A stretch of DNA of 64,000 nt. It comes from Macrostomum lignano. Taxonomy: Eukaryota. The translations under genes and the position numbers were made by a program. The DNA lies in the NCBI GenBank assembly GCA_002269645.1, contig NIVC01003404.1, forward strand, positions 35,543-99,542, given 5' to 3'. Of this stretch, positions 1,466 to 35,897 are shown in pieces (the first letter of the stretch is position 1; every line of letters starts with the position of its first letter). The notes beneath the pieces are model-generated. The model worked only from the letters and a program-made list of their open reading frames with translations, ran no database searches and was not told where the DNA came from.

Positions 1466-3968
1466 ATGGAGTCAATAATTTTCGGCTTGTTAATGCTTTT
1501 GGTCTGTCGCTGTAGTTGCTTCGATTCTGCCCAAGGTAAGCCAATTGGTTTGGATTATAGGGGATTCTGCATTATCTAAGAGTCAGCAATTTTCATTTTC
1601 TCGTATCACGACGCCAGCTACCATGTAAAGAATTCGGCTCATAGTTGAGGGGCAGATGAGAGTGGAAGGCGAGAAAATGTAAGATAAGAGATGAGAGAGT
1701 AGAGGCGAGAGATTAGATGAGAGAATAGAAGAGGAGAGAAGAGGGTGGGGGAGAGAAGAGGAGAGAGAAGCAGAGAGAGGAGAGACCGAGAGAAATGAGA
1801 ATAGACACAATTCACAAACCCTAAGCAGGCCGGATTGCTATTGTGAAGTTTCAAAGGGCCCGAGGCCGGATAAAGAGGCTTTGTGAGCTGCATGTGGCCC
1901 GCGGACCCGGGTGTACTAGCCCCTGGGTCAAGTGAATATTAGCGGTGTCAGTGACTTGGGCTGACCAGATAAGCATCAGTGCCAAGTCGTGCGGCGCATA
2001 CATGAACAGCTGGTGCAGGCGGTGCTAATGTACACCATCCCGTCATATCTGTTTCTGTCAGTGGGGAGTAGGCGTCCTGCAAGGAGAGGCAGAGACCAGG
2101 AGATTGCATATGTGCAGCTCTTTAACGTTCTACAATCGCTTTGCAGGATCCTGCAATCCTGCTCGCTACACGCAGCACAATGGTGTCCTTACGATCAACT
2201 CCGGAGTCAGTAGCCAAGTCAGTAACATCTCTGGAGTGGAATCCCTGCAGGGTTGCCTGACTCTGTGCCGGATGAGGGACTGCGTTGCTCTCGAGTACTT
2301 ACCGAGCAGCGGTCTTTGCCGGCCGGTGACTGTCTCAAAAGGATCTAGCGAGTCCAGAGTCCTGGGGACAGAGCCTGGCTCTGAAGTTTTCAAGCTGAAG
2401 AATTTCGACGCAGTGATTTTTTCGATATTAAGCACCAACATCACTCTTCTCTTCACAAGTAAGCCTTTCTTTTCGTATTAAAAGCATTTTGTAACCATAG
2501 TTAAGTAAAAATTAATTTGACAACAAATTTCAGGCACCAGCACTGGTCAAAACGGCAGCATACAGCAGACAAGGATAAACGTGACCGGCTGTTATCGCAT
2601 TGAGATTGCCGGAGCCAAGGGTGGTAGCAACTATGGCGAAGGAAAATATGGCGGTAGGGGAGCCCTGGTCGCTGGAAATGTCAGCCTGACGGCTGGAAGC
2701 GTGCTGTCCATTGTCGTTGGTCAGGCTGGTGGCCACGCGAGATCCGAACATGTTGGAAGCGGCGGCGGCGGCGGAAGTTTTGTGTACCGTGCATCCGACA
2801 GTGAGCCGCTCATGGCGGCTGGCGGTGGCGGCGGAGCCTCCAGGGACAACCATGGTTCGTTTACCTTTTCATTTTAAGTAGTTTCCTTTTCAATACGTAC
2901 TAATCAGAAAGAATATTCCAAAATATCTTACTTCGAAGTATATAAACTTTAAGGCACAATTTTGATTTCACACTTACAATCAGAACGCTTTAAAGTTAAT
3001 TTTTAATGAAACATCTGCGCTTTCACAAATGAAAAAAAAATCGTCAGCTTTGAAGCTAAATGAATTGCTAACGCGTACATGGTGAAAACCTATCTCCAGA
3101 GTAGATCGGTGAAATAAATTTAATTTGTATTTTGTAAATTTTTTTGGTAGCTCGTAGTCTCTGCACGAGCCTAGTCTGTTATATTTATAGTGTTATGGCA
3201 CCAGAACGCATAATGGTACTAAATAAACCTAAAGTTATTTACATCCACTAAAAAAGGTTAAACACTTTTCTTCAGGACGCCCCGGTGAGGCTGGAAGAAA
3301 CGGTTCAAAGTCTTACGGCTCAAGCGAGGTAATTTCTTGATATTTTCTTATAGTAAAAATTGCAGAATATTAAATGTTACAATTAATTATAACGATACGT
3401 ATGATCTACTATTAAAAAAATATAGCCAAAGAAAAAACTATGCTCGATAAATTTACTGTCTTATTAAAACTATGAGTATTTTTTACTCACGACAACACAC
3501 AACCATTTTATACAGCCCTCTGAGATCGGTATAGGAGGCATCAATGGACAACCGGGCAGTAATGATCCGTCTAGTGCGGACTCAGACGAAAATTACGGTG
3601 GCTGCGGCGCTGGCTGGAAGGGTAGAGCAGCCGTTTCGACCAGTAACGAAAATGGTGGCGGAGGTGGTAGCAGGTATGAAAATTGGATTGGCGGCTCCTC
3701 CAGCCAAGGCTCTTCCTACGGCTTGGGCGGCTTCGGTGGCGGCGGAGGAGCTGCTACGGGCGACGGTAGCACAGCGGTAGGTGCCGCTGGAGCTGGTGGC
3801 GGCTACAGCGGAGGCGGAGCCGGACTTGATGACGATCTTTCTGGCGGAGGCGGTGGCTCCTTCTGTGGCGGTAGCGGCTGCGTGGCCACCACTGGCGGCA
3901 ACACGAACAGTGCCCAAGGATTCGTTAAGATTCTGTTTGATTCTGTTATCCCCTACACATGCGCTTGA
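1466..3968 (+). CDS. Copy A: secreted PAN/Apple + ALK/LTK-like glycine-rich domain protein, 5 exons (1466-1535, 2147-2458, 2534-2854, 3276-3328, 3516-3968), 402 aa
   Basis: GT-AG introns of phase 1,1,1,0 join to an open 1209-nt CDS. Signal peptide MESIIFGLLMLLVCRCSCFDSAQG. PAN-like Cys pattern GCLTLCRMRDCVALEY..SGLC. Glycine-rich domain motifs TGCYRIEIAGAKGG, LSIVVGQAG, GGGGGSFV, PLMAAGGGGG, GGFGGGGG, GGGYSGG, GGGSFC. No TM segment; ends TCA*. Confidence 0.85.
1855..1926. mobile_element. hAT/Charlie-type MITE end remnant in intron 1 of copy A (homologous remnant in copy D at about 26185-26250)
   Basis: gctgcatgtggcccgcgg...gcccctg in A and ggggtcggcaaactccggcc..gggccgcatgcagccc in D resemble Charlie-type termini; adjacent to a GA/CT microsatellite tract in both copies. 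Confidence 0.4.
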
Positions 3969-4707
3969 AGTCTAGAAATTAATCGGGGATTTGGAGAGCA
4001 TAGGGTGGCGGCCGAAAGTAACACTCATTACAGCCAAAGCAAAATATAATGTTTGTTTAGAAACTTATCCAGCAAACCAAAGCCAAGGGAACCGAGAGAA
4101 AGATTACAGCGTCACAGGGGAATAATAATTGGATCGACGGGGAATTAACAGGAATAAATGGGGGATGAACGGGAGTGCCAGATTCTCAGGTAAAGAGACG
4201 GTTAAGAACAAAGAATAAGAACAAGTAGGTTATGCGAAGCCGATACAACTCGTATAACCAAAAATCCTACATATTAGGAATAATGTAGCAATATACTACA
4301 TATACATTATTATTCTAGATATCAGTGGCTGCAACATGTTTTATTCGATCATATCTTTACTCAAGCCACAGAAATGTAGGATTTTTTATTCTTTTATCAT
4401 TGTTTTTTAGAATTCAAAAAAATTTGAAAACGTTTTTTTGAAAATCTACGTAGTTTCCACTAGTCGGTAGCGTGAATATGTGACGCACCGAAATGATAGG
4501 CGACAAAAATGTTTAAGCAACGCCATGCAATTTAAAGCCATTGAATTTCCTCATTGAATTATTGAGTACCAGTTTGCCACTGCTGTTTGACTAAATTGCT
4601 TTATAAGATAGATGTCCCCCTATAGATTTCCCTTCTTGATATATGCATTCACTATAACATGGTATTTCGGTATCTAATTATACCATTAATCTATAGCTTT
4701 CATAATA

Positions 4708-5414
4708 TACCTTTTTACGTTCTATTTGATAAAAACTGCAACCAATTTGGCCACGGCTCAGCCTGACCATAGACATAGAATTTTCCATAGACAGCCACCG
4801 CTAGCGGCAACCAATTTGGTAAAAACTGCGAGCTATTTTGCCAGCTTGAAGATAGCAGCTGCTCTGATGGCGAATCGTGGGCCGTACCAAAAGATAAGTC
4901 AGCTGGATCGAGAGCGAATCGTGAGAGCGTACAGGAGTGGCGACGACTGGGGAGAGCTTGGCAGAATGATGGGGATGAAGAAACCGACAGTGAGGAACAT
5001 CGTGACCACGTATAAACGAACTGGTAGAGTTGGCACTCTGCCAAAAGGAGGAGTGAAGAGGATGGCGCTGACGGAGGCTATGGTGGACACCATTGTTCAA
5101 TTCGTCGAAGGTCAACCTACTGCCTCTCACGCCTCTCAAGTGCCTGCGCTGGATCAACCATTCCCAGACGTACTTCAATCGGTGCTTGAATGCTGAGGAC
5201 ATAATGTTCTGACTTCGTGCATGTATTGTTAACATTCTTTATCGTTATTGTTATGCTATTGAGCTGCTATCTTCAAGCTGGCAAAATAGCTCGCAGTTTT
5301 TACCAAATTGGTTGCCGCTAGCGGTGGCTGTCTATGGAAAATTGCTGCGGCTGCGTCAGGCTGAGCCGTGGCCAAATTGGTTGCAGTTTTTATCAAATAG
5401 AACGTAAAAAGGAA
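4708..5414 (+). mobile_element. Internally deleted Tc1/IS630-like DNA transposon with about 150-bp TIRs
   Basis: Long inverted repeats at about 4708-4862 and 5262-5414, flanked by TA. ORF from ATG 4867 (MANRGPYQKISQLDRERIVRAYRSG...TVRNIVTTYKRTGRV) resembles the N-terminal HTH of Tc1-family transposases; no DDE domain. Absent from the homologous flank of copy D. Confidence 0.8.
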
Positions 5415-5449
5415 TAATTTTGTAATATCAGACTATAAAACTAACAGCT

Positions 5450-6200
5450 AATTGTCCAATAACTTTTCCTGCGTTATCTGTAATAATGTTTACATATGTA
5501 CCTACGTTTACCTATCTACTCATGTTCACCTATTTACTCATGTTTACCTATGTAAGATTTACCTATGTTTGCCTATTTACTCAAGTTTGCCTGTTTACTC
5601 AAGTTTGCCTATTTACTCATGTTTACCTATATGTACATAGGTTTACCTACGTAAATTTCCAAAATGTTTGCCTAAAATGTTTTGCCTACTTATGTACTTA
5701 TATTTACCTATCTACTCATGTTTGCCTTTTTACTCATTCAACTACACTAAATATTCACCTACGTACCTATGTTAACCTAGTTACTCAAGTTTGCCTATTT
5801 ACTCACGTTTGCCTATTTCAGTCATGTTTACCTAGGTTTACTTTATACGTACTTATGCGTTCCTTATGTCAAGACCATAACGTCACGCTTGTAACTCTTG
5901 CACACTTGCCTGCATATACATATGCCAAATAGTCAGTTTGCCCAACGCAGATGTTTTTTCTCTTCGATGTTGCTGAAAATATACGAAAGAATTCTCTATT
6001 TCTTTTTTATTATCCTACAGAAAGTGCATTTCGATCTCGCCTCTTTCCCAATCTGAGGAACAACAACTTCCTATGGTAATTTATCGGTGTAGGACTGAGA
6101 ACCATCCAGTTCTTCTCAGTTGTCATTGTTCTCAGTCCTGCTACAGTTGGACGAATTTAAGCTAACATTTTAACTGATCAAAAATTAAACAATTCAAAAA
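5450..6200. repeat. Dispersed repeat Z with an internal degenerate ~18-bp minisatellite (gtttacctatttactcat-like)
   Basis: Reverse-complement matches at about 22555-22870 (without satellite), 40850-41035 and 63517-64000 (with satellite). Confidence 0.75.
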
Positions 6201-6424
6201 AATTTAAAATAACAAAACCGTATACAACAGGAAGTTTAGCACAGTAAAAAATAAAAGCGTCTTGTAGCGCCTCGCGTCACGTATAGTGGCCGTAAATATC
6301 ACTCCAAAGTATTTTTCAACAGTGTTGGCGTCACTATTGATGCTAAGTCTAATTTTCTTTGCCGGTTTAGCACTCACTAGGTTGCTTTGTTTCACAGCTT
6401 CAACAGAGCGTTCAGGCTCGGTTT

Positions 6425-6625
6425 AAATAGACGCGGACTTGATGGCTGACTACCTTATTGAAGAGCATGAGATATTTTAACATGATCTTGGGCGTCAAAC
6501 TGAATATATCGCTCAATAGCTGGCATGTCGAACAGTGTCCTATAACACGAGCGATGTCCCCTCTAGCAAAGCCAGCACGATCGTACCCTCGTACGATGTA
6601 GGGTACTTGCGCCAGTCTTGCTTAG
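6425..6625 (-). pseudogene. Tyrosine recombinase C-terminal remnant (Crypton/DIRS-like); second copy at about 19570-19745 (+)
   Basis: Frameshifted reading KTGASTLHR-AGFARGDIARVIGH..IERYIQFDAQDHVKISHAL resembles the box II region (..T.L..AG....I...GH.S...Y) of tyrosine recombinases; second copy reads KTDASTLKRAGFA*ENIARVTG. Confidence 0.5.
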
Positions 6626-6769
6626 CTAGAGACTGTTGAGTGTACTATTTAACTACGAGTATTATCTGGAATTTCTAAAATTTTCTTCGACAGAGGGATT
6701 GGCTGAATCAATCCAAAATAGTGTGTTTATTATGTCTAAGAGTGTTTTGTGTCTTTTAGTGTCACTGCC

Positions 6770-7075
6770 TCTGTCTAAAGCTGATGGCGAGAACTTCGTT
6801 CTGGAAGACGGTGGAGCAGGTGCCGGTGTGCTGGGAGTAGGTCGCCTCAGTTCTTCCTCCAAACACGATGCAGATTTGGGACCCATCAGTGAAGCAGTGG
6901 ATTTCATGGGGTTTCCAGTTGTCTCTTGATTCATGACGTGGTGGAATGCTGGTTGTGAATTTGAGCGGAGGGCAGAGGGTGGACGGGATTCCGTCCGAGA
7001 GGGTCAGCAGGCCTCCCGCTGCTTCCAGCTATCGCAGGCTGAGGTCGCCGTGCGGCCGGGCTAAATGTCTTTAGA
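6770..7075 (-). pseudogene. Non-LTR retrotransposon RNase H fragment; second copy at about 37395-37735 (+)
   Basis: HEIHCFTDGS..CIV..SQHTGTCSTVFQNEVLAIS matches the LINE RNase H motifs FTDGS and TVFQAE..AI. Confidence 0.7.
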
Positions 7076-7824
7076 CGACAGGTGTGTCAATAAATGCGGG
7101 AGCAGGTCTCAGAATTTTACTGCTTTCAAAGATATCGTAAAAGCCTTCTCTTTTATCTGGATTCAGTAACATGAGTTAAGTTAGATTCAGAGAGTTTTTT
7201 TAACCAGCGAGCTTGTAGGATTATCCTAGTTTTTGTAAATTAAGGAAGAACTGGGTTCGATTTGTTTAGTCTATACTTCTAACTTTATGCTCCAATTGCT
7301 TTTAGTCGCATCGCTTTAAAAAGTTGAGCTGTTGTATAAGAAGGCGTCAGCTTTATGATCTATATCTATACTGTATTGGATTATTTATCTCTGTCCAATA
7401 CTACTCATAAATGCATACTTTTGTCTGGAGCAAAAACGATTTGTGTACTTTTTGCAAAATAGTTAAAGTATAAACATCGAATACTTCGGCAAAAAAATTA
7501 TGTAAAGTTACGTACTGTACTCCTCCATTGATGGCTCCTTACGAGCTATAAAGTGCGTCAAAGCATCCACACGATTTACCAGATAAAGAATTTCTTGTGT
7601 TCTCTTCCAAAAAGTTAATCGATTAAGTTCGAACAAAGTCGGTTGCTTCTTTAACAATCAAAAGTAACTGTAGCTTGGAATCGAATAAGGGGATTAAGTA
7701 ATTTTGTTCTCAATTGAACATACAACTCGTATTTTGCTGTCAGCCAGTGGTAAAAACTGTCTACTCGTACGTTTAACACGAATGAGTAAATCAATAGTAA
7801 AACAATTGGTTATAGTCATGTATT

Positions 7825-10217
7825 TGCCTGATGCTGTGCCGGGTGAAAGGCTGCGTTGCGGTGGAGTTCCGGAAGAGCAGCAAACTGTGCCGGCCGCTGC
7901 TGACGGTACCAGAGGTGTCAGGGTCTGTCGCCAGCAACAAGACGGGACGTTTGAGAACCGAGGCTCAATCGATAGAGCTCAAGATTGAAAACATTGATGA
8001 ATTATTGGGCCTGGACACTAAAATCAACGTGAGACGCTTCGTCACGAGTGAGACTTATTTTCAATGCTCTCTCGATTTAGTCGAGACTAACAGACTTGAA
8101 TTTTCAAAATACCCGTTTTTGCAGACAAAAAAAATCGAGAGAAACGATTTCTGCGGAGACGAAATGCAACAACATAAGCTCACTTAAGTTGATAAAAAAT
8201 TCCAAATTTTTTTTACACAGTTCCTAATAAAAATTCGCCAGCACAGAAGATTCCGTCTGTGGTCGCCACTTTTGAGAGTGCAGCTGAAGTCTCTTAATCT
8301 TAGCGAGTTGAGGAATGAAGTGAGGGGAGCGGTGTGCGAGGGTTGGACGGATTAAAGCTACCCCTCAGTTTTCTCGTACCTTTTATTTCAGAATAGCCCA
8401 AGAAATTTGCTCACTGCGCATGGATTTAAATTTTGCTGAGTATATTTAAAGAGTACCGAGTACCACGTACCGAGTACTGAGATACGTAGCTAGGGGGGCC
8501 GTAGCCCAGCGGTAGCGCAGCTGCTCTGGTGTGCCAGCGACCCAGGCTCGATTCCAAGTGCAGTCACATTAATTTGGGGCTGAATTGGAATCTCGGCTTG
8601 GCTCTGCTCGTGCAATTAACGGCCTTGAGAGCCAACCCCCCAAGGCGCAGTGAAGTGTACATGCCTAACGATAATACAAAGTTAGGGCCGCTGTACACTC
8701 CTGTGTGAGTGTGTGCCTGCGTACGTATCCGCGCGCTTGTATGCCTGCTCAGGGGAGTCGGCGGAATGGGCAGTAATGCCTCTCGCCGGTTGTGTGCCTA
8801 TGTCGCTTAAAGTGCGCCAGGATGCACACAACCCCCTGCCTCTAATAAAAAAGGTAACTGAGTTACGTAGCTTATTTTTATCTTCAACTTCACGGGAAAA
8901 ATTACTTTTTGAAAGTTGATTTGTTGCCTTTTCTACAAAAATAGATCGAGAAAATTACATTGAAATTTTTAATCCCGTCGAATATGTAATCCAATTATCC
9001 ACTTGGTTGACTATGGATCAACTCGATTAGGCTTTATTAGATATGTTTGTGAGTGCTTTTATGGCACTTCTATCATTATTGTTCTACTAGCGAATATAAT
9101 AACTACCCATTCAGACACTTCAACTGGTCGACATGGCGCCATCCAGCAGATGACAATCAGCGTGACTGGCTGCTATCGTGTCAAGACCGCCGGAGCCAAG
9201 GGTGGCGACAGCTTTGGCAGAGATCAGAAACACGGAGGTAGAGGAGCCCTGATCGCTGGCAATGTCATTCTGGCCGCGGGTACTCAGCTGTCCATTGTTG
9301 TCGGACAGGCCGGAGGCAAAGTGCATACTGACGAGTACGCTAGTGGTGGTGGTGGCGGAGGCAGCTTCGTGTACCGGACATTGGACAATGGTCTGCTGAT
9401 GGCTGCTGGCGGAGGCGGAGGCGCATCTTATCAGTACGATAGTGAGAGTTTTCAATTGGTTTTTATCAACAACTTGACAATATGCATCAAATGCAGATGT
9501 AGTTTATACCGCATCGTCAACTATGACTCACTTTTTAGGACAGTCAGGTGAGGCGGCAAATAACGCAACGGGATCTGTCGGTACCGAAGATGTAAGTCGG
9601 TGCGATTTAGAAAGTTTTCTTTTCATGAAGCGTTTAGACTTCGTAGGTAAAATGTTATAAGCCCTAACTTTAAAAATCACCAAAACGTTACTACTATAAG
9701 TAGTAGCACTTCTAAGCATACAACTCAATTTCGCTCAGTGAAACAGCAATACTTTAGATTTAAATGGTTGCAGCCGAATCAGATGGGCATCGGAGGCGCC
9801 AACGGACAACCGCGCAGCAACGACCAGAGCACTGCGGCTTCCGAAAGAAACCCTAGCCTGGTGGCTGCGGAGCCGGTTGGCTTGGCAAGCCCGCCGCCGC
9901 CCGCGGCAAGCATCTCGTACAGAGACAGAGGCGGTAGTCGCGCCGACGGCTGGGTCGGTGGCAGCGGTGGAAAAGGCAGCCTAGCTGACGGCGGCTTCGG
10001 CGGTGGCGGAGGCGGAGCGGCCGCCATAAAAGGAGCGGCAGGAGCCTGCGGAGGCTACAGCGGCGGCGGAGCTGGGACTCCGGACTGGATTTACGCCGGA
10101 GGCGGCGGCGGCTCTTCCTGCGGCGGCAGCGGCTGCGTGGCCACCACGGGTGGCAACACGGGCAGCGAGCACAGCTTCGTGCTCCTGCGACTGCTGGTCG
10201 ACGGCTCCTGCAAGTAG
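7825..10217 (+). pseudogene. Copy B: 5'-truncated PAN + glycine-rich paralog (exon remnants 7825-8047, 9115-9441, 9539-9591, 9774-10217)
   Basis: Lacks promoter, signal-peptide exon and the first third of the PAN exon (about 1.6 kb deleted relative to C 16485-18078). Remaining splice sites are canonical. Last exon carries +5 and +1 insertions. Confidence 0.8.
8492..8853 (+). mobile_element. tRNA-derived SINE in intron 2 of copy B
   Basis: A-box tagcccagcggtag, B-box-like ggctcgattcc, A-rich tail, ~18-bp target duplication gta(a)ctgagwtacgtagct. Empty site in E near 34840 and in C near 15885. Partial copies near 17555-17650 (+) and 27940-28060 (-). Confidence 0.8.
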
Positions 10218-10924
10218 CCACTCTAACGATCACTTTTGCAGCAAAAAAGTGACTATCTTATGCGGAAAATATCGAACTCTGGTTACGGTCATTGAGTAGC
10301 GGTTTGAACCACCCTTGTATAAAAATTTACATTATAACAGACGGGAAATTGTAAAGCACACGATTACTTTAACACACCTGTGCAGCAACAGTTGCAGTAC
10401 GCCCTTACGATCATGGTTTGCATAATTTTGCCTCCAAGACGATAAATACGAGGTATAGTACTATTTGCCATTCATTCTTAGAAGTAGTATACTTGATTGT
10501 TTAAAGATTGTGAACAGGCCCTTTCTGACTCGAAATGTTATACGTACACTCGTATGGACTATTTATTGGACTATTGACAGATGAATTGATAGACATACAC
10601 ATGTATCAGTCTACTATAATTACCTATAAAACTGTACTTCGTTAGTATTGATTATTTTTCGCTAATTTTAATTACTATTTTTAATCAGCAAGCGGAGTGA
10701 TTTCAGAATCTCGAATCTCTTTATTGGACTAAAAAGTATAAAATAAAGATACAAGTCTAATTTAGCTTCTAGAATGGAAATCATAATATTGTGTTAAAGA
10801 AATTTACGCGTTGACTCGTGACAGTTACAATTCCTTTTGCTTCATGATCTGACTAGAAGGTAAAACAACAGTGAGATATCAGGGGGCTACCGCTTCTTGC
10901 TTCTTTGAATCGTGCCTAAGTAAG

Positions 10925-11366: not shown

Positions 11367-11699
11367 CCCCCGAACAATGTAGGAGAAACATTCCTGCAGC
11401 CTTGTCTGCTTAGATCAGACAAACTGCCTCCAGTAATCTCGGTTCTTTGCTTTTTAATAAGAAACGATGCGTATGCCAGCAAATAACAGTCAGAATTGGT
11501 TATTCTCGACGTCAAAGACTTCTGGACAATATAAAAAACACAGATTAATACCCCTTTCAACTTTCGATTACTTTTTAAGAAATATTGCTTCTTCAGTTTA
11601 AATTGATCCTGGGATAGGTAAAAATGAAAAGGATAATCCCATCAAACGACAGTAAGAAAGCAGTTATCTACAGCTAGAGGCGTTCCTGACCCGCCTGCG

Positions 11700-11707: not shown

Positions 11708-11760
11708 GACTGCATCGCTAAACCAAGATCGAAGGCAACCTCAACTTCCCCTGACAAACC

Positions 11761-12927
11761 ATGGCGAACTCGTCCGTCGTAAGGATACAATTCTACGCCA
11801 CTCTCAAGGGCGTCTTTGTCGACTGCCTGCCGAATGCGCCAAATCGACGCATATTCTGCCCCATCAGCACAGCCTACGGCATTGTGACCGGCCTGCTGCT
11901 GCCTCTGGTGATCGTGTCCGGACTCTTTGGCAACTGCACCACGGCCTGGATCACGCTGGGTCGCGGTGCAGAGCGCTCCCGGCTAAACGTTTACCGGGGC
12001 GCCATGGCGATTGCTGACAACGCCTCCCTGCTGGTATCTGGCTGCCTTGACCTGCTTCTCACTCGAGGGCTGCCGTGGGTGAGCGGCGGTCGACTGGGCT
12101 TCATCGTGTCAAACTAATCTTCTACAGTTTGCACTGCGCATCGTTTCGTTCAGAAGTGGCTCAGCCTGCAGTCGATGTGCATCTTTCTGGCGATGGTGCT
12201 GGACCGAGCTCTGTGCCTGGCCATGCCGTTTCGCTTCCAAGTTGTGTCGTACCGCACGGACTGGCGAGTTTGTGGTGCAGCTGTCGCGGCTTCATTGGCA
12301 CTGAGCTCCGTCTGTCTGGCTGCGTACGGCTGGGACGAGTTGCAGTTCGGACCCACTGGACCCATGATGACGATCTGCAAAGTTTACTCCAGTATCCAAG
12401 GTGCACTCCGAACCCTGTTGAGTGTATACATGGTGCTTTTCTTGCAGCCTCCGACTCTGCCGATACTCTGCGTGCTGCTCGCGAATTGCTACTTGGTCTT
12501 CAAGCTGGTCGCCATCTTGCGACAGCACCGTCAGCTCTCGACTTGGCTTGGAACAGCTGCTGAGGAAAGAGACAAGATGTCTAACACAATTCTGTGCGTA
12601 GCCATGTCTGTCCTTCTCGCTCTGTGCTCTCTACCGAGTGTTCTAATCATTCTTGCAGTTGAATTTATTCGAGAATATGACACGGTGGCAGATGCTCAGC
12701 TTCTCCGCGCTCTGGTGAGAATTTCGAAAGTAAGCGAGGCGCTGGTCATCTTCAACCAAAGCGGCAACTGGCTGCTTCTGCTCTGGAAGAACCCAAATTA
12801 TCGGCAGCGGTTCGTGACTCTGTTCCGTGTGCAGCGTTGCAGCAATTGCAGGAAAGACTCTGGTCGCTCGGGTCCTACAGATCCAGACTTGCACCAGATA
12901 AACAATTTCGCTAGCCTACAGGCTTGA
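11761..12927 (+). pseudogene. Intronless class A (rhodopsin-like) orphan GPCR with a single in-frame TAA at 12115-12117
   Basis: ORFs 11761-12117 and 12175-12927 share a frame, and the intervening codons read SSTVCTAHRF... Seven hydrophobic segments; TM1 GLFGN, TM2 AIAD, TM3 C..DRALC..MP, ECL2 Cys, TM6 LCSLP, TM7 NQSGN..NPNYR. Confidence 0.8.
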
Positions 12928-23580: not shown

Positions 23581-26576
23581 TCAAGCGCATGTGTAGGGGA
23601 TAACAGAATCAAACAGAATCCTAACGAATCCTTGGGTACTGTTCGTGTTGCCGCCAGTGGTGGCCACGCAGCCGCTACCGCCACAAAAGGAGCCACCGCC
23701 TCCGCCAGAAAAATCTTCTCTCAGTCCGGCTCCGCCTCCACTGTAGCCGCCACCAGCTCCGCCGCCACCTTTGGTACTACCGTCGCCCGTAGCAGCTCCT
23801 CCGCCGCCACCGAAGCCGCCCAAGCCGTAGAAGGAACCTTGGCTGGAGGTGCCGCCAATCCAGTTTTCATCTCTGCTACCACCTCCGCCACCATTTTCGC
23901 CTCTGGTCGCAACGGCTGCTCTACCCTTCCAGCCAGCGCCGCAGCCACCGTAATTTTCGCCTGAGGGCGCATTAGACGGATCATTACTGCCCGGTTGTCC
24001 ATTGATGCCTCCTATGCCGATCTCAGAGGGCTGTATAAAATGGTTGTGTGTTGTCGTGAGTAACAAATAGCAGTCTTAATAGGAGTTTTTAGGTTTCCTA
24101 CCGTATTTTCCTTTTATTCTTACTAATAGTAGAAAATCAAAAAAAATATCGTCCTAATTATTTGTAAGATTTTATCTTCTGAGACTTTAACATTAGAAAA
24201 GTATCAAGAAATGTTAAAAATAGTAGTGATATTTGTTAATTTTACATTTCAATCTTTCAGCTCTTCTCTAGAGTATTTTTTGGCGGTCGAGTCACAGTTA
24301 TTGCATATATAACTCTAAATGTAATAGAGCTCGTTAAGTACTACAACTACTACAACTAAAACAAGCTAGTGGTCTTCAATACTCACCAGGCAAAGGAATG
24401 ATTCACATTTAAATATTAAAAAACCTCATTTCTACTACTGAAATATTACTAATGCATAAATAGTGTAGGATGCGCATTATCTAATTTGATACAGAACGAA
24501 CTGTGTAAAATTCGGCATAAATGAAAGTACTTTATGGACATCACAATTGTGTCAAGATTTAATGCAATCCAGGTCCTGATCCGGTTTATTCTAGTTGTTT
24601 CTGGTCTCTCTTTGGACATTTTAACGTAAATACTTTGGTGCAAAAACTTTTCGGATCGTAATGACTGTGAATCCAGCTTTAGAGTTGACTTTTAAGGTTT
24701 CTTTCTAATCTAGAGTGATAAACTTAATTAAAAAGCTTGTTCTGAGGTTTGTCAAAAGACGCTGAGCATCAAAACTTATTAATTATTATCGAGTATTACC
24801 AAAAAAATTGTCATAAAATTACCGTGTTTGAGCCACGTGAGTTTGAACCGTTTCTTCCGGCCTCACCCTGGCGTCCTGAAAAAGGGTGTTTAACATTTTT
24901 CAGTGGACTTAAAACACTTAAAGGTTTTTTATAGTACCATTATGCGCTCCGACGTCACAGCACTATAAATTTAACAGACTAGGTCCATACAAGGACTACC
25001 TGAATAGAATTTGGCAAAATATAATTTAAATTTTTCTTGTCAATCTACTCTGGAGATGGTTTTTCACCCATACAAGCTAGCAACTTCGAAGCTAAACGAG
25101 TGTTTAAAGTTGTAGAAGCGTATGTAGATGTTCTTTTAAAAAATCAACTCTAAAGTGTTCTGATGTTGAGTATCGAGTCGAAAATTGTGCCTCAAAATTG
25201 ATTTAATTGAAGTAAGCTATTCTGGAATCTTCTTTCTAATTACATGTTAAGATACGAGCAGTCAGTATTTAAAAGGAAACTTCAGTTCAACGAACCATGT
25301 TCATTTCTGGAGGCTCCGCCGCCACCGCCAGCCGACATGAGCGGCTCACTGTCGGATGCACGGTACACAAAACTTCCACCGCCGCCGCCACCTCCAACAT
25401 AATCGAATTTCGCGTGACCACCAGCCTGACCAACGACAATGGACAGCACGCTGCCGGCCGTCAGGCTGACATTTCCAGCGACCAGGGCTCCCCTACCGCC
25501 ATATTTTTCTCTGTCAAAGTTGCTACCACCCTTGGCTCCGGCAATCTCAATGCGATAACAGCCCGTCACGTTTATCGTTGTCTGCTGTATGCTGCCGTTT
25601 TGACCAGTGCTGGTGTCTAAAATTTGTGGTCAAATTAATTTTGAAACGAAATTTCAAAACGAATGCTTTTAAAACGAAAAGCAAGGCTTACTTGTGAAGA
25701 GAAGAGTGATGTTGGTGCTTAATATCGAATTAATCACAGCGTCGAAATTCTTCAGCTTGAAAACTTCAGAGCCAGGCTCTGTCCCTAGGACTCTGGACTC
25801 GCTGGATCCTTTTGAGACAGTCACCAGCCGGCAAAGACCGCTGCTCGGTCGGTACTCGAGAGCAACGCAGTCCCTCATCCGGCACAGAGTCAGGCACCCC
25901 TGCAGGGATTCCACTCCAGAGATGTTACTGACTTGGCTCCTGACTCCGGAGTTGATCGTAAGGACACCATTGTGCTGCGTGTAGCGAGCAGGATTGCAGG
26001 ATCCTGCAAAACGATTGTAGAGCGTTAAAAAAGCTGCACTTATGCAATCTCCTGGTCACTGCCTCTCCTTGCAGGCAGGATGCCTGTTAGTAGCACCGTC
26101 TGCACCAGTTGTGTAGGCCGCACGACTTGGCGCTGATGCTTAACTTGTCAGCAGGAGTCACTGACACCGCTAATGTTCACTTAGAGTAGGGGTCGGCAAA
26201 CTCCGGCCTGAGGGCCGCATGCAGCCCGTGAAGCCTCTCTCTATCCGTCCCGTCGGGTAGAGAGTCTCTCTCTCTCTCTCTCTCGCCTCTCTCCTCTCTC
26301 CCCCTTTTCTCCTCTCTCCCCTCTCTCCCACCTCTTCTCGCCTTTTCTCTACTCTCATCCTGTTTGTCGCGTCTCATCTCTCATCTTTTTTCTGTCCTTC
26401 CACTCTGACCCGAAGCCATCTACCAATTTTAGGTGGAAAATATTGCAGACCCTTTGACTTGGACGGATAATACAGAATCCACTATTATGCAAATCAATTG
26501 ACTTACCTTGAGCAGCATCGAAGCAAACACAGCAACAGACCAGAAGAATGAACAATCCGAAACTTATTGATTCCAT
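23581..26576 (-). CDS. Copy D: secreted PAN/Apple + glycine-rich domain protein (A-subtype), 5 exons (26576-26507, 26003-25692, 25616-25296, 24875-24823, 24030-23581), 401 aa
   Basis: Inverted paralog of A; canonical splice sites, open 1206-nt CDS, signal peptide MESISFGLFILLVCCCVCFDAAQG. Confidence 0.85.
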
Positions 26577-29110: not shown

Positions 29111-29180
29111 ACATGGATAACATTTTAAGTCAGAGAGAGAGAGAGAGAGTCTGCTTACATACCTTTCAACAATCAAACAT

Positions 29181-29730
29181 ACGGCTACCGGACATTTCCC
29201 CTCCGGCGTTTCCCCTCCGGCGATTCCCCTCCGGACATTTCCCATCCAGCTATAACGAAATAACAGAGCTTTAGAACATGCCAAAAATTTTTTTGCACGC
29301 ATGTACGTCACATCCATGTAGTTATGCTGTTAGATCGCTTTTATTTTAAAAATTATGTAAGTAAAAAGTGAGAGTAGATGGTTTTATTATGTTTTATTAT
29401 AGGTTTTATTATAAAAATTATAAAATAATATATTATTATTATCTTAATTATTAATATATATGTGGCTATGCTGCTATACATACACATATATATATACATG
29501 CAACTTATGTTCTCTTTGGACATGTCCGAAGGCACTGTTATTTCGTTATAGATGAAGGGGAAATGTCCGGAGGGGAAATGTCCGGAGAGGAAATGTCCGG
29601 AGGGGAAATGTCCGGAGGGGAAATGTCCGGAGGGGAAATGTCCGGAGGGGAAACGCCGGAGGGGAAATGTCCGGAGGGGAAACGCCGGAGGGGAAATGTC
29701 CGGAGGGGAAACGCCGGAGGGGAAATGTAC
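29181..29730. mobile_element. Foldback/MITE-like element with inverted arrays of a 15-bp unit (ggggaaatgtccgga) and an AT-rich core
   Basis: About 4 units on the left and about 12 on the right in opposite orientation, bounded inside by inverted ctataacgaaataacag / ctgttatttcgttatag. Confidence 0.7.
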
Positions 29731-30349
29731 TAAAGACTAAAATTAGGATGATTTATAAGAAAAGCCACGGAAAAGTTTCTCCTGGTAAAAAAACACCTAC
29801 AACAAAACATATCTTGCTTCATTTGAAATGAGATATTGCGTGGATTTTGTGTTAAAAACTGAAAAATATTTATCTCGCTAACACACTTTGAGGCCAAAAT
29901 CGGCCTCCAGCGAAATTTATACGATTTTCAAATGTACAACGTCGCATATTCAACTCACAGTCACATGTACCTTCTTTATCACACACAGTTTTAGTAGTAC
30001 CCATTACATCAGCTATACATACTGAATCTGAATGCGATATATATACTCAGCAACATTGAAAGTCGCCACCCCAGACCCAGTATACCTAAGTAAGAGTTGG
30101 GAAACCTTGCGTCGTTGGAGTGTAACGAGCTGAAGTCAGTCGCTTTAGGATGGCGGTTTTCAACGTTGTTTGAGTATATGTGCATACTTGCCTATCATCA
30201 TCAAGCCTATACTCTACATTCTAATCTACACTGAAAGCACTCTGCTCCACTAATAGTAGTTTATGCGCAAACATGCTGAGTTGTCTGTTAAGTTATTGTA
30301 GTATCTGTGGTTTTTACGGAACTCTGCGAATGATCATCGAAAAGCTCAC

Positions 30350-30800
30350 TTATGGACACGTAACTTCAAATGAATTGACAAGACGCATCAACATGTAGCC
30401 ATGCTCGCTGTCCGTGTTTCCACCTTTAGCGGCCACACAACCCGTTCCGCTGCAGAATGAACCCCCCCTCCGCCGCAATGGTTGCCATAGCAGCCGGCAC
30501 CGCCTCCGCTGTAGCCGCCACCAGCTCCAGCGGCTCCGTAATAATCCGACACCCCAGATGACCTTTTGTAGCCAGCACCACTCCACCGCCGAAGCCACCG
30601 CCAGCTTGGCTGTTGTCTCCAGCACTGCCGCACACCCAGCCCTCGGCCAGACTGCCTCCTCGCTCCCCATCGGATGTGCCTCGCCTGGGCTTCGAAGCTC
30701 TGCCGAGCCAGCCCGCACCGCAACCACCATGATGAGTGCTGCCTAGCGTAGAACTAGGATCGTTACTACCCGGTTGTCCACTGATGCCTGCTAGTCCTCT
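30350..30800 (-). pseudogene. Copy F: orphan last exon of a third, more divergent glycine-rich paralog with at least two frameshifts
   Basis: GISGQPGSNDPS..GGCGAGWLG..GGFGGG / GAAGAGGGYSGGGAG / GGSFCSGTGCVAAKGGNT..TCP* spread over three frames. Confidence 0.75.
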
Positions 30801-33630
30801 TAGATAATGCTGAATAAAGCAAATGTATAGAAACAGAAAGTACATGTATGTATAATTCCTCAGAACTTGTACATTTATAATCATACGTACAGGCCTCTGA
30901 GGACATATGGAACAGATTTTTACTAGAACTTGGGACCGTGGAATCGAAATCCAAGCAGTTATTAAATTGAAATAATAAGTTGTTGATGTCATCGACAACA
31001 GTTAGTTATGCGCATTCGGAATTAGGCTGAATCTATTATAATATGCTCAAAGGATAGTATCCAGGTATTCAGGTTCATTTGACACCGACTTTTGGACTGT
31101 CTTTGAAAACACCGATGTTGATTATGTTAGCGAACTGCGAATGCTCCGTCAATTTGGTGTACACATAAAGACACAAACTACTGGTAAAGTAATCACAATT
31201 CTAGAGCGTCAAGATGGCTTACTCGGGCAAAGGATGAAGAACAAAGCCCGAGAGAGCAGAGGTCAAGTAACTAGAATTTTCGGTTGGCATATCAACATCT
31301 AGCATCGCAATGTCCTCAAAGAGAAAACATATGTCGTATAATTTAGCCTAAACACACTTTGGCATCTAAGTCAAAACTTAAAAGTTTAAGTTCAAGCAAA
31401 CTTTTGGGCTGGTTTGTCTGCCATTCACTGTCTGAAAATCCAACCTTCAATTAAAAATCAATAAAATAGGACTACGCAAAGGGAAGTTTCAAGGGAAAGC
31501 AAAAAGAAAACACTACTCAATCTTTCTGGTCTTACGTTGCTTGTGCCAGTCGAGTCAGAGCCGTTTCTTTCAGCCTCGCCTGGATTTCCTGCAATTTGTC
31601 GTTTAATGATTCGAAACTCTTATTTCTTAGTCCCACTATGCTAAAATGAGTCGTCTTTATCTATCTATGTAGGTATATGATATGATAAACCTTACTTAGC
31701 CACGCAAGATCGTAATTATATCGTTTTTTAAAGAGTGAATCTATCAGGAAAGTAGTTATACTAACAAAAACGTGACCGTGTCAGCTTATGTTAAACTTTC
31801 TTAATTATCTACTATAAAGGGATTTTGATCTCGCTAGTCAAGTGGGCAATCAGATACTTTACTTCTACATTTAGTTTTACTGCTATGAATGGTTAAGAAA
31901 AGCTGGCCCAAGTTAGTATGGTAAAGTAAAGTTACTTGCTGCAACAAGCCCTCTTTGCAGTAGTAGAAAAGCTAAGTAAAAAAATTCAGTTTTCTTGAAT
32001 CCCATTGAAATTCGGAAATGAGTTTCCAAAATTGGGGAAAATCAATATTGGTTGCTTCTGAAATTTTCCAGCTCTTTGTGAAGATGAGGAGTCTAACTCT
32101 CTCCCATATTATCTATCTTTTTACTGGTCTCCGAGGCTCTGTCATTCTTCAAGTCTTTCTTCGTGTCTTTGGCCCGTCTTTACCAAGAATTGTACTTGTT
32201 ACATGCATTTGCTTTCCAATAGCAAGAAGCGGTAGACGTAGCCCCTGATATCTCACTATTACTTGTTTTACCTTCTAGTCAGATCATGAAGCAAAAAAAT
32301 AATTGTACCTGTCATGAGTTAACGCGTAAATTTCTTTAACACAGTAATATGATTTCCATTCTAGAAGCTAAATTAGACTTTTTATCTTTATATTGTTTAG
32401 TCCAATAAAGAGATTTGAGATTCTGGAATCACTCCGCATGCTAATTAAACAGATAAAAATTGTAATGAACATTAGCGAAAAATAATCAATAATAACGAAG
32501 TGCAGTTTTATAGGTAATTACAGTAGGCTGATATGTCTATCAGTTCATCTGTCAATAGTCCAATAAATAGTCCATACAAGCGTACGTATAACATTTCGAG
32601 TCAGAAAGGGCCTGTTTGCATATCTTTAAACAATCAAGTATACTACTTCAAAGAGTGAATGGCAAATGGTACGAGTACTACACCTCGTATTAATCGTCTT
32701 GGACGCAAAATTATGCAAACCATGATCGTAAGGGCGTACTGCAACTGTTGCTGCACAGGTGCGGTAAAGTAACCGTGCTTTAAAATTTCCTGTCTGTTAT
32801 AATGTAAAATTTTTATACAAGGGTTGTTCAAACCGCTACTTAATGACCGTAACCAGAGTTCGATATTTTCCGCATAAGATAGTCACTTTTTTGCTGCAAA
32901 AGTTACCATTAGATTGGCTATTTGCAGGAGCCGTCGACCAGCAGTCGCAGCAGCACGAAGCCGTGCTCGCCGCCCGTGTTGCCACCCGTGGTGGCCACGC
33001 AGCCGCTGCCGCCGCAGAAAGAGCCTCCGCCGCCTCCGGCGTAACTGCTGCGATTCCCGGCTCCGCCGCCGCTGTAGCCTCCGCCAGCTCCTGCCGCTCC
33101 TTTTATGGCGGCCGCGCCTCCGCCTCCACCACCGCCAAAGCCGCCGTCCGCGGGGCTGCCTTTTCCAGCGCTGCCGCCCACCCAGCCATCGGCGCGACTA
33201 CCGCCTCTGTCTCTGTACGAGATGTTTGCGCGAGCGGCGGCGGGTTTGCCAAGTCAACCGGCTCCGCAGCCAAAAGGCTAGGGTTTCTTTCGGTAGCCGC
33301 AGTGCTTTGGTCGTTGCTGCGCGGTTGTCCGTTGGCGCCTCCGATGCCCATCTGATTCGGCTGCAACCATTTAAATCTAAAGTATTGCTGTTTCACTGAG
33401 CGAAATGAAATTGTGTGCTTAGGAGTGCTACTACTTAGAGTACTAACTTTTTGGTCAATTTTAAAGTTAGGGCTTATAAAATTTTACCTACGAAGTCTAA
33501 ACGCTTCATGAAAAAAAACTTTCTAAATTGCACCGACTTACATCTTCGGTACCGACAGATCCCGTTCCGTTATTTCCCGCCTCACCTGACCGTCCTAAAA
33601 AGTGAGTCATAGTTGATGGTGCGGTATAAA

Positions 33631-34668
33631 TTATTATGGAAGTGTAGCTCGTCTAAAGTAGGAAAACTAACAAATAGTAGGAAAAAAAACGTCAACAAAA
33701 ACATAAAATAAAATTTTCTTTCTAGCCAACGCGTTTCGTCAAACACAAGACGTCGTCAGGGCAAATTCAATTAACCTTAATTTACAACACCAATATATTT
33801 AAGAATAACAAACTGTACAGTCCAAAGGCGGGTCGAAACAGTCCGGTAGAATTTCAAAAGTACACAACGAAGGGAAAGAGAGAGAAAAATAGGCATGGTT
33901 CTGCTCACAGTACTCTTAGCTCACGCTCCACCCCATTGCCAGCAAGCTGCACATTCAAGTTGGGTTTGTGCATTCTGATATACGAAGCTTCAATAATCTT
34001 AAGCCTATGGTCAAATTTGCACCCATCCAGCACTTTAAAGAGCTGAATCGGTTCACTGTCAAAACATTTTTTACAAACAAGCAGATGGTCATTAATCGCA
34101 GAGCTTCTTAGCCAATGTTCCCTAGCTCTAGTGTGCAGGCGTTGCTTCGTTTTCCCAATGTAGGAAACGCTCTGATCCTCAGAGCAGGGAAATTGGTACT
34201 CGTAAACAACACCAGCCCTTAGAGCAAGTGGAACAGCTGACTTGAGCCTGCTATAGCGACCAATCTTTTCACTGCGAAAAACAATCCTAACGGTGCAGTT
34301 AAGCCATTTGCTAAACGTTTTCTCAAGTTTTTCCTGAAGTCAAGCAAAATTTTACCAAAAAATGGGAGAACCAACAGAGCGTCCCAAGAATCTATCTCCG
34401 ATTGCCTGGATCTCACATCGCTGGAAACTTTCTTGGTGACAAACGCATTGATAATGCGGCTGACAAAACTGAGAGGGTAACCGTTGGATCTGAGGATTTT
34501 AGTCAGGGCACGAACCTCATGGTGGAATAAACTCCAAGAACTGCTCACCTCGTAGGCTCTGTGAAGGTACCTAACTAACCCGACTTTCCAGTGAGACGGA
34601 CATAAAGCATGGAAATTTAACATCAGTCCTTTTATAACATCAGGCCATAAAAGCGCACACAACCTGCA
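33631..34668 (-). mobile_element. 5'-truncated Penelope-like retroelement (RT C-terminal region + GIY-YIG endonuclease + 3' terminal region)
   Basis: HWKVGLVRYLHRAYEVSSSWSLFHHEV..IL..NGYP; VYEYQFPC..VSYIGKTKQRLHTRAREH; IEASYIRMHKPNLN. Confidence 0.85.
33725..33762 (-). ncRNA. Minimal type I hammerhead ribozyme in the Penelope terminal region
   Basis: Minus strand GCC-CUGACGA-C-GUC(uuguguuu)GAC-GAAA-CGCG-UU^GGC. Confidence 0.8.
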
Positions 34669-35897
34669 TATCTGATAAAGCCTAATCGAGTTGACTCATA
34701 GTCAACCAAGTGGATAATTGGATTACATATTCGACGGGATTAAAAATTTCAGAGTAATATTCACGATCTATTTTTGTAGAAAAGGCAGCAAATCAACTTT
34801 CAAAAAGTGATTTTTCCCGTGAAGTTGAAGATAAAAAATAAGCTACTTATCTCAGTACTCGGTACTTGGTACTCGGTATTCGGTACTCGGTCATCCTGGG
34901 ATTAGATTGCTCGGTACTTATACTCGGAAATGACGGCACCACTACTCGCCCAGCCCTGCTCGGACACAACATACATTTCGCAGATAAGCAATCCATAATA
35001 TTCATTCATGCATTGTGGGAGACCGCTTGATCGGCTTTTTAACAACTTCATTGAGTTTATTGTCTATGGCCGAGCGCAGTGTTTACTGTGACAGTGGCTG
35101 CTGCAGGAGCGAACTTTAATTACCACTGTTTTGCAGAAAAAGTGAAGCCTCAATAAAGTAAAAAGAATATTGGAATCAAGGACCACTAGAAGTTACCGTT
35201 GTATCAGGACGCAACACTCGTAAATATTGTAAAATTATTTGAAGGCCCGCTTGTTTACGTGTATTTATCGGTACTTGCCTTCAAAAAGCATTCTACTCGA
35301 CTGTTTTAAAGAAGCATGCACTACATTTGAGCCTCCATAAAGCCTCCATAAATAGGTGTAAATTGCTGCTCTTCTGGAACTCAATTCAACTTCTGGAACG
35401 CAGCCTTTCACCCAGCACAGCATCGGGCAAATATTGTACATGACCATAACCAATTGTTTTACTATAGATTTACTCATTCATGTTTAAGGTACGAGTAGAG
35501 AGTTTTTTACCACTGGCTGACAGAAAATACGAGTAGTATGTTAAATTGAGGATAAAATTACTTAATCCCTTTATTCGGTTCTAAGCTAGCTACAGTTACT
35601 TTTGATTGTTAAAGAAGCAACCGACTTTGTTCTAACTTGATCGAATAACTTTTTGGAAGAGAACGCAAGAAATTCTTTGTCTTGCAAATCGTGCGGATGA
35701 TTTGACGCACTTTATAGCTCGTAAAGAGCCATCAATGGAGGAGTATTATACGTAACTTTATATAAATGTTTTTGTCGAAGTATTCGATGTTTATACACTT
35801 GTAATTTAAACATTTTGTAAAAAGTGCACAAACAGATTTTGGTTCAGACAAAAGTATGCATGTACGTGTAGTATTGGACAGAGATAAATATTCCACT

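Follow-up and report, generated by a model that had tools for sequence, protein, structure and literature searches.

To our knowledge, the glycine-rich domain (GRD) of ALK and LTK has been studied almost entirely within these two medically important vertebrate receptors. PAN/Apple domains, the other kind of module that will concern us here, bind proteins or carbohydrates. The GRD is the ligand-binding part of ALK and LTK (as given in the titles of the PDB entries that are matched below), while the ALKAL (or Augmentor) ligands are found only in vertebrates and have no non-vertebrate homologue (PMC10605310). In quite another setting, the tail fibre of cyanophage Pam3 has a conserved glycine-rich stem and a hypervariable tip that recognises the host (PMC9608196). 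The subject of this article is a gene cluster in the flatworm Macrostomum lignano, which lies in a window of 64,000 nt (assembly GCA_002269645.1, contig NIVC01003404.1, 35,543-99,542 of the forward strand; all coordinates given here are positions in this window) and in which three intact genes are predicted to encode proteins that combine a GRD with an upstream, probable PAN/Apple-type domain. What is new is the PAN-linked, multicopy and, by prediction, secreted form that the module takes here; the domain family as such, and the database sequences, were already known.

The cluster and its predicted proteins

A tblastn search with the spliced protein of the first gene, c1, repeated with that of c3, finds exactly six loci in the whole window, just as a preliminary description of this DNA had it; they span about 34 kb (1466-35421), three of them being intact (c1, c3 and c4) and three decayed (c2, c5 and c6), and since the E-values for individual exons go down to 1e-132 they are not chance matches. 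After GT-AG splicing the three intact genes give uninterrupted five-exon open reading frames (ORFs) of 402 (c1), 402 (c3) and 401 (c4) aa, so that the three complete ORFs of 401-402 aa originally reported are recovered in full. It should be said that c1 was spliced by eye and script, and that the gene models are predictions from the genomic sequence. Intron positions and phases are conserved among the three, the exon lengths being 70/312/321/53/453 nt in c1, 61/330/330/53/435 nt in c3 and 70/312/321/53/450 nt in c4, and exon 4 measures 53 nt at all six loci. In c3 an alternative in-frame acceptor 24 nt 5' of exon 3 would lead to a protein of 410 aa. Each intact protein has the same layout, namely a signal-peptide exon, a PAN/Apple-like domain with four cysteines, a linker, a GRD and a stop (Table 1).

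The identity of the glycine-rich part can be approached in several ways, and these agree. All three intact proteins contain the ordered motif series AGAKGG, VVGQAGG, GGGGGSFVY, PLMAAGGGGG, GGFGGGGG and GGGYSGGG, which had been identified at the outset as that of the ALK/LTK module of TNF-like and polyglycine-II parts, an identification with which Pfam, a profile comparison with solved structures and the predicted fold are all in accord. The Pfam family PF12810 (ALK_LTK_GRD) scores 32.5 bits in c1, 27.1 in c3 and 32.1 in c4, relative to a cut-off of 24.5. When c1 is used on its own as a phmmer query against PDB sequences there is no match (and no ALK chain at E <= 1); a family profile made up of c1 and 67 database relatives (68 sequences) matches nine distinct PDB sequences, every one of which is ALK (including an ALK-ALKAL2 fusion construct), LTK or SCD-2, with E-values of 5.6e-16 for ALK 7mzw, 8.3e-16 for 7nx3, 3e-12 for LTK 7nx0 and 4e-12 for Caenorhabditis elegans SCD-2 7lir. 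The profile alignment starts at the first TNF-like strands and does not end until the last strand, with every glycine motif in register (for 7nx3, profile positions 39-338 are aligned to chain residues 54-336).

The AlphaFold2 model of c1, calculated on the family alignment, has a pLDDT of 80.8 and a pTM of 0.70, the pLDDT being 84-96 over most of the ranges 141-270 and 341-390. The glycine motifs within it are modelled with high confidence and are assigned by DSSP to neither helix nor strand, as polyglycine-II would be. A Foldseek search with the model against the PDB returns 21 matches at E <= 1e-3, and all 21 are GRD structures of ALK, LTK or SCD-2 (E 8e-11 to 6e-8), the fold match covering some 340 aligned columns and the best TM score, 0.67, being obtained on the isolated TG domain of LTK. 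The combination of AlphaFold and Foldseek had been named in advance as the check to be made on the fold, and both the sandwich and the lattice are present in the model. On the strength of profile and model together, the glycine-rich part is confirmed as an ALK/LTK-type GRD, with a predicted TNF-like beta-sandwich and polyglycine-II lattice.

At the other end of the protein, the product of exon 1 is short and hydrophobic, and positions -3 and -1 are taken by small residues (MESIIFGLLMLLVCRCSCFDSAQG followed by SC in c1, MLWKLIIIHLVCEFFAVPVIA followed by TC in c3; the A-x-G that precedes the predicted cleavage point of c1 was read from the sequence). In each protein hydropathy is highest in this segment (Kyte-Doolittle, 19-residue windows: 1.86 in c1, 2.28 and 2.43 in the other two), and residues 1-27 of the c1 model have pLDDT values below 50. 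Exon 1 is thus signal-like, a putative cleavable signal peptide, in keeping with what had been claimed for it.

Exon 2 encodes a domain of about 100 residues with the pattern C-x3-C-x4-C-x11-C, the four cysteines of which are invariant in nine out of nine flatworm paralogues. It is modelled with pLDDT values of 76-91, a helix (57-66) being packed on strands, and Foldseek relates the model to plasminogen PAp (probability 0.99, E 0.46), the N domain of HGF (TM score 0.59), SML-2, MIC4 and Wsc1, the weakness of the E-values being due to the shortness of the domain. A profile of the domain has just one match in the PDB, a weak one (E 0.065), which is to the PAN lectin SML-2 of Sarcocystis. The domain is probably a divergent one of PAN/Apple type, as far as sequence and model can tell. 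The PAN domain of the preliminary description is borne out by its cysteine core and predicted fold, and its Pfam score is marginal, below the cut-off.

No receptor parts are apparent. In each intact ORF the stop codon follows directly upon the last GRD strand, hydropathy indicates no transmembrane segment in c1, c3 or c4 apart from the N-terminus, nor any C-terminal hydrophobic tail, and in these three proteins there is no Pfam match to EGF, MAM, LDLa or kinase domains. One hydrophobic window (>1.4), at about aa 172, was considered as a membrane segment and rejected, as it corresponds to the conserved VLSIVVGQ beta-hairpin, which is modelled with high confidence. A tblastn search of the 64-kb window with the ALK kinase domain (a query that serves as a generic tyrosine-kinase probe) gives a best E-value of 0.2 and thus no kinase exon, and the neighbours of the cluster copies either point the other way or are remnants of transposons. 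Transcripts running on into transmembrane or kinase exons had been put forward as one observation that would tell against this architecture, and downstream of the genes the window holds no such exons; the claimed lack of receptor and kinase parts is borne out, neither the genes nor their surroundings encoding a transmembrane segment, an EGF module or a kinase. Each intact protein has 6-8 N-glycosylation sequons, and the GRD of c1 contains four conserved cysteines together with one near the C-terminus (aa 147, 282, 369, 374 and 401), features that fit passage through the secretory pathway.

Table 1 Features of the PAN-GRD gene cluster, in window coordinates.
Feature	Position	Strand	Basis
c1 exon 1, start codon and signal-peptide-like segment MESIIFGLLMLLVCRCSCFDSAQG	1466..1535	+	gene model
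c1 exon 2, PAN/Apple-like domain and linker, aa 24-127	2147..2458	+	Pfam, Cys, model
c1 exon 3, first GRD half (TNF-like strands, GAKGG, VVGQAGG, GGGGGSFVY, AAGGGGG)	2534..2854	+	Pfam, profile alignment to ALK
c1 exon 4, 53-nt GRD micro-exon	3276..3328	+	gene model
c1 exon 5, second GRD half (GGCGAGW, GGFGGGGG, GGGYSGGG, GGGGGSFCGG) and stop	3516..3968	+	profile, model
c2, probable pseudogene	7825..10217 (PAN-exon remnant 7825-8047; exon 3, 9115-9441; exon 4, 9539-9591; exon 5, 9774-10217)	+	
c3, intact, 402 aa	exons 17186-17126, 16583-16254, 15636-15307, 15171-15119, 14989-14555	-	splicing, Pfam
c4, intact, 401 aa, inverted paralogue of c1	exons 26576-26507, 26003-25692, 25616-25296, 24875-24823, 24030-23581	-	splicing, Pfam
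c5, 3' gene fragment	30350..31588 (exon 4, 31588-31536; exon 5, 30809-30350)	-	
c6, pseudogene	32918..35421 (PAN-exon remnant ~35421-35363; exon 4, 33594-33542; exon 5, 33360-32918; exon 3 absent)	-	
Retroelement fragment, GIY-YIG, Penelope-like, in place of c6 exon 3	33905..34662	-	Pfam

As we picture it, the intact genes would give rise to small secreted two-domain proteins of about 400 aa that serve in soluble extracellular binding or recognition. The rigid, conserved glycine lattice and the sandwich would act as a scaffold, the loops between the motifs, which vary from one paralogue to another, would make contact with the target, and the PAN/Apple-like domain would supply a second binding site, probably for a glycan or a protein. 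Such proteins would probably be used to recognise or agglutinate microbes or food, or to attach to mucus or to surfaces rich in glycans. A binding role is suggested by analogy, with the fibre tip of Pam3, with the viral proteins to which the fold is matched (see below) and with ligand binding by ALK and LTK themselves.

The same secretory layout and sequons, taken with a glycine content of about 30% in the GRD and several gene copies that might provide for high output, could also be read as belonging to a structural or material secretion (mucus, rhabdite, eggshell, adhesive or stylet matrix), in which the glycine lattice would have a mechanical purpose and the PAN domain would anchor it to glycans, carbohydrate binding being a property of the PAN/WSC-like folds found among the fold matches. 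This seems to us rather improbable, however, as the glycine motifs are part of a compact fold that is confidently predicted and not of low-complexity repeats, the proteins are small and single-domain, with no repeat expansion, and the flatworm adhesion papers among the literature searched contain no link to such a protein.

Constraint, decay and duplication

The closest pair of intact genes, c1 and c4, differ very unevenly along their length. Identity is 96.8, 92.5 and 92.7% in the three large exons, 84.3% in exon 1 and 79.2% in exon 4, as compared with 68.5-74.7% in the introns and 77-80% in the flanks. The ratio of non-synonymous to synonymous divergence (dN/dS or omega, here always a Nei-Gojobori estimate) for this pair is 0.56 over the whole protein, 0.32 over the PAN domain and linker, and 0.63 over the GRD; for c1 against c3 and c4 against c3 it is 0.26-0.28, with dS saturated. 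Since the exons are far better kept than the introns and dN/dS lies below 1, the three intact genes are constrained by purifying selection, the evolution of their GRD being fairly relaxed or partly diversifying. The replacements between c1 and c4 are located between the glycine motifs, and the GRD blocks of lowest pLDDT in the model (271-280, 311-320 and 331-340) are these same variable loops. For the same pair, GRD codons were also divided according to their conservation in the 68-sequence alignment, a measure on which coral sequences weigh most heavily; omega is about 2.6 (Nd 17.8, Sd 2.2) where conservation is poor and 0.41 where it is good.

A raised dN/dS in recent paralogues (the 0.56 and 0.63 just quoted), a birth-and-death history (see below) and a secreted layout are also what might be expected if these were fast-evolving reproductive proteins, acting in seminal fluid or gamete interaction, with sexual selection driving both turnover and change in the loops. 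We think this very unlikely. The architecture is conserved as far as cnidarians, which argues for an older and more general role, and the domain terms searched for are absent from the main text of a screen of M. lignano prostate transcripts (PMC5977470).

The three remaining loci are in different states of decay. Only exons 4 and 5 are left of c5, and two frameshifts are needed to read the latter; this fragment represents a third, different subfamily, its nearest M. lignano relatives being the entries P0003, P0004 and P0124. The other two, c2 (in which exon 1 is missing and the PAN exon lacks its 5' half) and c6, have two lesions in common. Compared with c3, both have a deletion of some 1.6 kb, which makes the counterparts of 18077 and 16476 directly adjacent; exon 1, intron 1, the promoter-proximal region and 107 nt at the start of the PAN exon were lost with it. 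In both, moreover, 5 bp are inserted into exon 5 (near 9857 in c2, near 33277 in c6), which puts the nearly invariant GGCGAGW motif out of frame. Given that both lesions are common to the two copies, the gene from which they descend had been broken before its duplication. In c6 the 5-bp insertion is uncompensated, and the GIY-YIG match in the retroelement fragment that occupies the place of exon 3 (33908-34216) scores 21.1 bits against a Pfam cut-off of 22.6. A separate observation concerns c2 only, where a 1-bp insertion near 9905, 48 nt 3' of the 5-bp insertion, allows the frame to be regained 16 codons later, and where exons 3-5 stay one open frame despite the missing 5' end; this restoration of the frame may be due to chance or to residual selection.

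Comparison of the window with itself shows how these copies are related on a larger scale. The block 1097-6404 (+) around c1 is 77-87% identical to the block 26938-22311 (-) around c4, the block 6692-10901 (+) around c2 is 84-91% identical to the block 37801-32221 (-) around c6, and c2 and c3 are about 80% identical. The history of the cluster is one of birth and death, in which segments of 4-5 kb have been duplicated, mostly in inverted orientation, while members have also been lost. To call the family "expanding", as was done initially, is correct in so far as it has grown by duplication, but three of the six copies are dead, and two of these were copied from a gene that was itself already dead.

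It might be argued from this that the whole cluster is non-functional and consists of decaying duplicates or of merely predicted ORFs, half of the copies (3/6) being clearly broken in a region that is full of transposon debris. We regard this as extremely unlikely, in that the ORFs of the other three copies are complete and none of their splice sites or conserved motifs has been lost, with exons much better conserved than introns and an omega below 1.

Some further features of the introns may be recorded here. In the subfamily of c2, c3 and c6 a (GTACTCG)n heptamer microsatellite occupies the same place in intron 2 (15888-16015 in c3, ~8450-8480 in c2 and ~34870-34900 in c6). Intron 1 of c1 and of c4 contains an AG-rich tract (~1640-1800 and 26290-26420, respectively), while intron 1 of c3 has, at 16600-16760, long homopolymer-rich G/C tracts with runs of 8-10 G or C that are missing from the matching intron of c1 and c4. 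In intron 2 of c2 there is a tRNA-like stretch at 8490-8560 (GGGGGGCCGTAGCCCAGCGGTAGCGCAGC...GGCTCGATTCC), in which ARAGORN calls no tRNA and which may be a tRNA-derived SINE.

Relatives, public records and possible function

The family is already present in public databases, as fragments or chimeras under misleading names. Three UniProt entries of M. lignano correspond almost exactly to members of the cluster, which identifies the window independently as M. lignano DNA: A0A1I8JE11 (P0006) is 99-100% identical to c2, A0A1I8JJH8 (P0002) is 99.6% identical to c3, and A0A1I8JKJ3 (P0122) is 99% identical to residues 25-235 of c1 and reads through into intron 3. The exon 3-4-5 junctions of P0002 are those of our c3 model, which gives them independent support, on whatever evidence the public model was based. 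M. lignano has at least 34 distinct family entries in UniProt, with paralogues 40-60% identical, and their automatic names include 'receptor protein-tyrosine kinase', 'PE-PGRS family protein', 'Apple domain-containing protein' and 'WSC domain-containing protein'. Kinase-less GRD entries that are misnamed comprise P0001-P0011, P0121, P0122, P0124, P0129 and P0134 from M. lignano, and some phage and giant-virus proteins as well. Among these, P0124 (740 aa) is a chimeric model in which PAN-GRD units are fused to unrelated sequence, and P0121 (2348 aa, 'receptor protein-tyrosine kinase') was rejected as a multi-GRD receptor because it is a chimera of three PAN-GRD units and unrelated segments, with no kinase. 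In the literature searched, PF12810 occurs in a single fungal genome paper, and no paper was found on kinase-less PAN-GRD proteins or their function; the statement of the preliminary description that no characterised protein of this architecture was known thus holds for that literature.

An exhaustive search yields 2357 cluster representatives at E <= 1e-3, of which 25 reach E <= 1e-30, and the close relatives outside M. lignano are cnidarian. In Porites harrisoni P0013 (ABFA07_017308) both domains are recognised by Pfam (PAN_1 with 31.9 bits, PF12810 with 34.3 bits), and others are Porites lutea P0047, the 'PE-PGRS3-like' protein P0045 of Rhopilema esculentum, which has an EGF domain, and Actinostola P0053. 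Beyond the animals, c1 matches a bacterial GRD protein, P0099, with 68 bits; the Pfam partners of bacterial GRDs are PKD domains, type IX secretion sorting domains and PEP-CTERM or pilin signals. Very long relatives carry up to seven matched GRD stretches. Against the viral structures of BFVD, the c1 model has 84 matches at E <= 1e-3, down to E 3e-17, and these include phage virion and tail-fibre proteins and 'glycine-rich domain' proteins of giant viruses. As c1 is nearer to cnidarian, and even to bacterial, GRD proteins than to human ALK, the proteins do not have the appearance of recent ALK truncations; from sequence comparison they are best placed in an old kinase-less GRD branch shared with cnidarians, and not among the receptor tyrosine kinases. 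On a side issue, a single-exon GRD ORF of 287 aa (P0012, L001 10001-10864) was found 8 kb downstream of Ig and collagen-like exons (1-2041) on a 509-kb eukaryotic contig from ENA, which, together with P0078 (Ig domains and a GRD), suggests that there are Ig-GRD proteins in another animal lineage.

These relationships also bear on the suggestion that the proteins are soluble decoys or modulators of a flatworm ALK pathway, which would either capture a ligand like Jeb or HEN-1 or pair with membrane-bound ALK. Their GRD is, after all, homologous to the ligand-binding region of ALK and LTK in the solved complexes, and is predicted to fold like it. Nonetheless we consider such a role very improbable. 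Quite apart from the fact that they are less similar to ALK than to the GRD proteins of cnidarians and even of bacteria, at least 34 divergent entries in M. lignano would be unusual for the decoy of one conserved ligand, ALK has no PAN domain, and the Jeb/HEN-1-type ligand that would be called for is one for which nothing in the analysis speaks. The ligands of invertebrates are LDLa proteins, the ALKAL/Augmentor ligands being without homologues outside the vertebrates (PMC10605310), and a role as ALKAL decoy consequently does not carry over to a flatworm. The module had been described initially as one that binds ALKAL ligands, and this is true of vertebrate ALK and LTK but not transferable to the present proteins.

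Taking everything together, a cluster of secreted PAN-GRD binding proteins, turning over by duplication and loss, is the reading to which we would assign a probability of roughly 0.55, and it owes this mostly to the anatomy of the genes, the binding role being the weaker part. The analysis shows the anatomy, the family to which the fold belongs, the lack of receptor parts and the selective constraint, and from the predicted proteins we infer secretion, binding and the part played by the loops. Several points weigh against this reading and should be borne in mind. The PAN_1 family (PF00024) falls under its cut-off of 21.4 bits in all three intact copies (21.1 bits in c4, 16.6 in c1 and 15.6 in c3), and comparison of the flatworm N-terminal domain with cnidarian PAN domains by hhalign gives only a weak match (E 0.056 over 42 columns), albeit with the four cysteines in register. 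The polyglycine-II geometry is read from the Foldseek alignments of a predicted model, and the splicing and secretion of c1, c3 and c4 are likewise predictions. As regards constraint, dS between c1 and c4 is 0.12, as compared with an intron divergence of about 0.25-0.3, so that exon-biased gene conversion may add to the contrast between exons and introns. Finally, diversification of the loops is hinted at by one paralogue pair with about 20 substitutions, which makes it statistically insecure.

A still wider proposal may be mentioned, which we think unlikely as it stands. It is that kinase-less secreted GRD proteins would form an old, animal-wide family for soluble recognition, common to cnidarians and flatworms and related to the GRDs of bacteria and phages, with fast-changing loops on the TNF-like and polyglycine-II scaffold that would bind microbes, prey or mates much as the tips of phage fibres bind their targets; ALK and LTK would then be one lineage that became wired to a kinase, and the M. 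lignano cluster would be a diversifying repertoire for innate recognition.

The same fold that is known from ALK and LTK also exists as a free, PAN-linked, multicopy and predicted secreted family in a tractable flatworm. RNA interference, transgenesis and in situ hybridisation are all available in M. lignano. The family therefore offers a way to ask what role the module has when it is free of a kinase, and what its targets were before the vertebrate ALKAL cytokines, and it bears on the question of whether variability in GRD loops serves recognition, as in phage fibres. On a more practical level, misleading automatic names can be corrected, and full-length gene models can replace the fragments and chimeras of the public record.

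Surrounding sequence and comparison with known systems

Scans of the window for Rfam families and tRNAs found nothing. Downstream of c1, at 4726-5196 (+), there is an ORF with a helix-turn-helix of Sleeping Beauty/Tc1 type (33 bits, cut-off 43), which is a transposase remnant. Two adjoining ORFs at 11761-12927 (+), which are flanked by c2 and c3 and lie close to the middle of the inverted arrangement, have weak matches, just under the cut-off, to 7TM chemoreceptors of nematode type (Srw 21.9 bits, Srsx 21.8 bits), and may be an intronless or frameshifted GPCR gene. Further along, at 38007-40838 (+), a gag-like ORF of an LTR retrotransposon with a CCHC zinc-knuckle-like motif is followed by a pol ORF with reverse transcriptase and RNase H domains (RVT_1 77.9 bits, RT_RNaseH_2 102 bits) that apparently stops short of the integrase. 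The stretch 41222-50000 has a strong strand skew (GC skew down to -0.59); it begins with a degenerate (TCTCTCC)n array of about 122 copies (41222-42087) and contains a 30-nt unit, GAAATCCTCTCCGTGAAACTGAA..., repeated in arrays whose higher-order periods are 111 and 171 nt, and the long 'ORFs' within it were rejected as genes, being artefacts of the repeats. What looks like a Helitron-type element lies at 55876-59982 (-), where the GC content is 0.55-0.59 and a Pif1-type helicase ORF (Pif1_2B 53 bits) stands beside a 551-aa ORF without a Pfam match, and it is this block that accounts for the jump in GC at 56-62 kb.

Among known systems, the GRD itself belongs with the TG/GRD region of ALK, LTK and SCD-2 (PDB 7nwz, 7nx0, 7nx1, 7ls0 and 7lir), with which it has in common the order of the motifs, the Pfam family, the profile match and the predicted fold. 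In other respects the differences are considerable. The flatworm proteins have no EGF-like module, transmembrane helix, kinase, MAM or LDLa domain, and have instead a PAN/Apple-like domain upstream; they are predicted to be secreted, are about 400 aa long and are encoded by multicopy genes, and similarity to human ALK is undetectable when single sequences are compared. The vertebrate ligands of ALK and LTK, ALKAL1 and ALKAL2, do not exist in flatworms (PMC10605310).

In cyanophage Pam3 gp24 (PDB 7ypx) and in S16 gp38, likewise, a glycine lattice emerges from a TNF-like sandwich, but the resemblance is limited to the GRD, with a Foldseek E-value of 4e-3 for 7ypx and TM scores of 0.2-0.29. The phage fibres differ in being trimeric, in having an N-terminal helical shaft, in needing a chaperone and in having no PAN domain; the c1 model shows no helical shaft of the phage-fibre type, its N-terminus being made up of the putative signal peptide and the PAN-like domain. 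For the latter, the comparison is with PAN/Apple binders such as plasminogen PAp, the HGF N domain, SML-2, MIC4 and yeast Wsc1, which it matches in the predicted fold of aa 30-110 and in the four-cysteine core, and from which it differs in having no evident fifth and sixth Apple cysteines and in the partner to which it is fused.

It is the cnidarian proteins that combine both parts. They differ from those of the flatworm in the EGF domain or fibrillar-collagen-C-like stretch that lies between PAN and GRD and in a longer GRD insertion, and the PAN parts of the two groups are barely alignable (E 0.056). Nevertheless P0013, P0047 and P0045 likewise begin with a cysteine-rich domain of PAN type and end with one GRD, and over that GRD the cnidarian proteins are 37-42% identical to c1.

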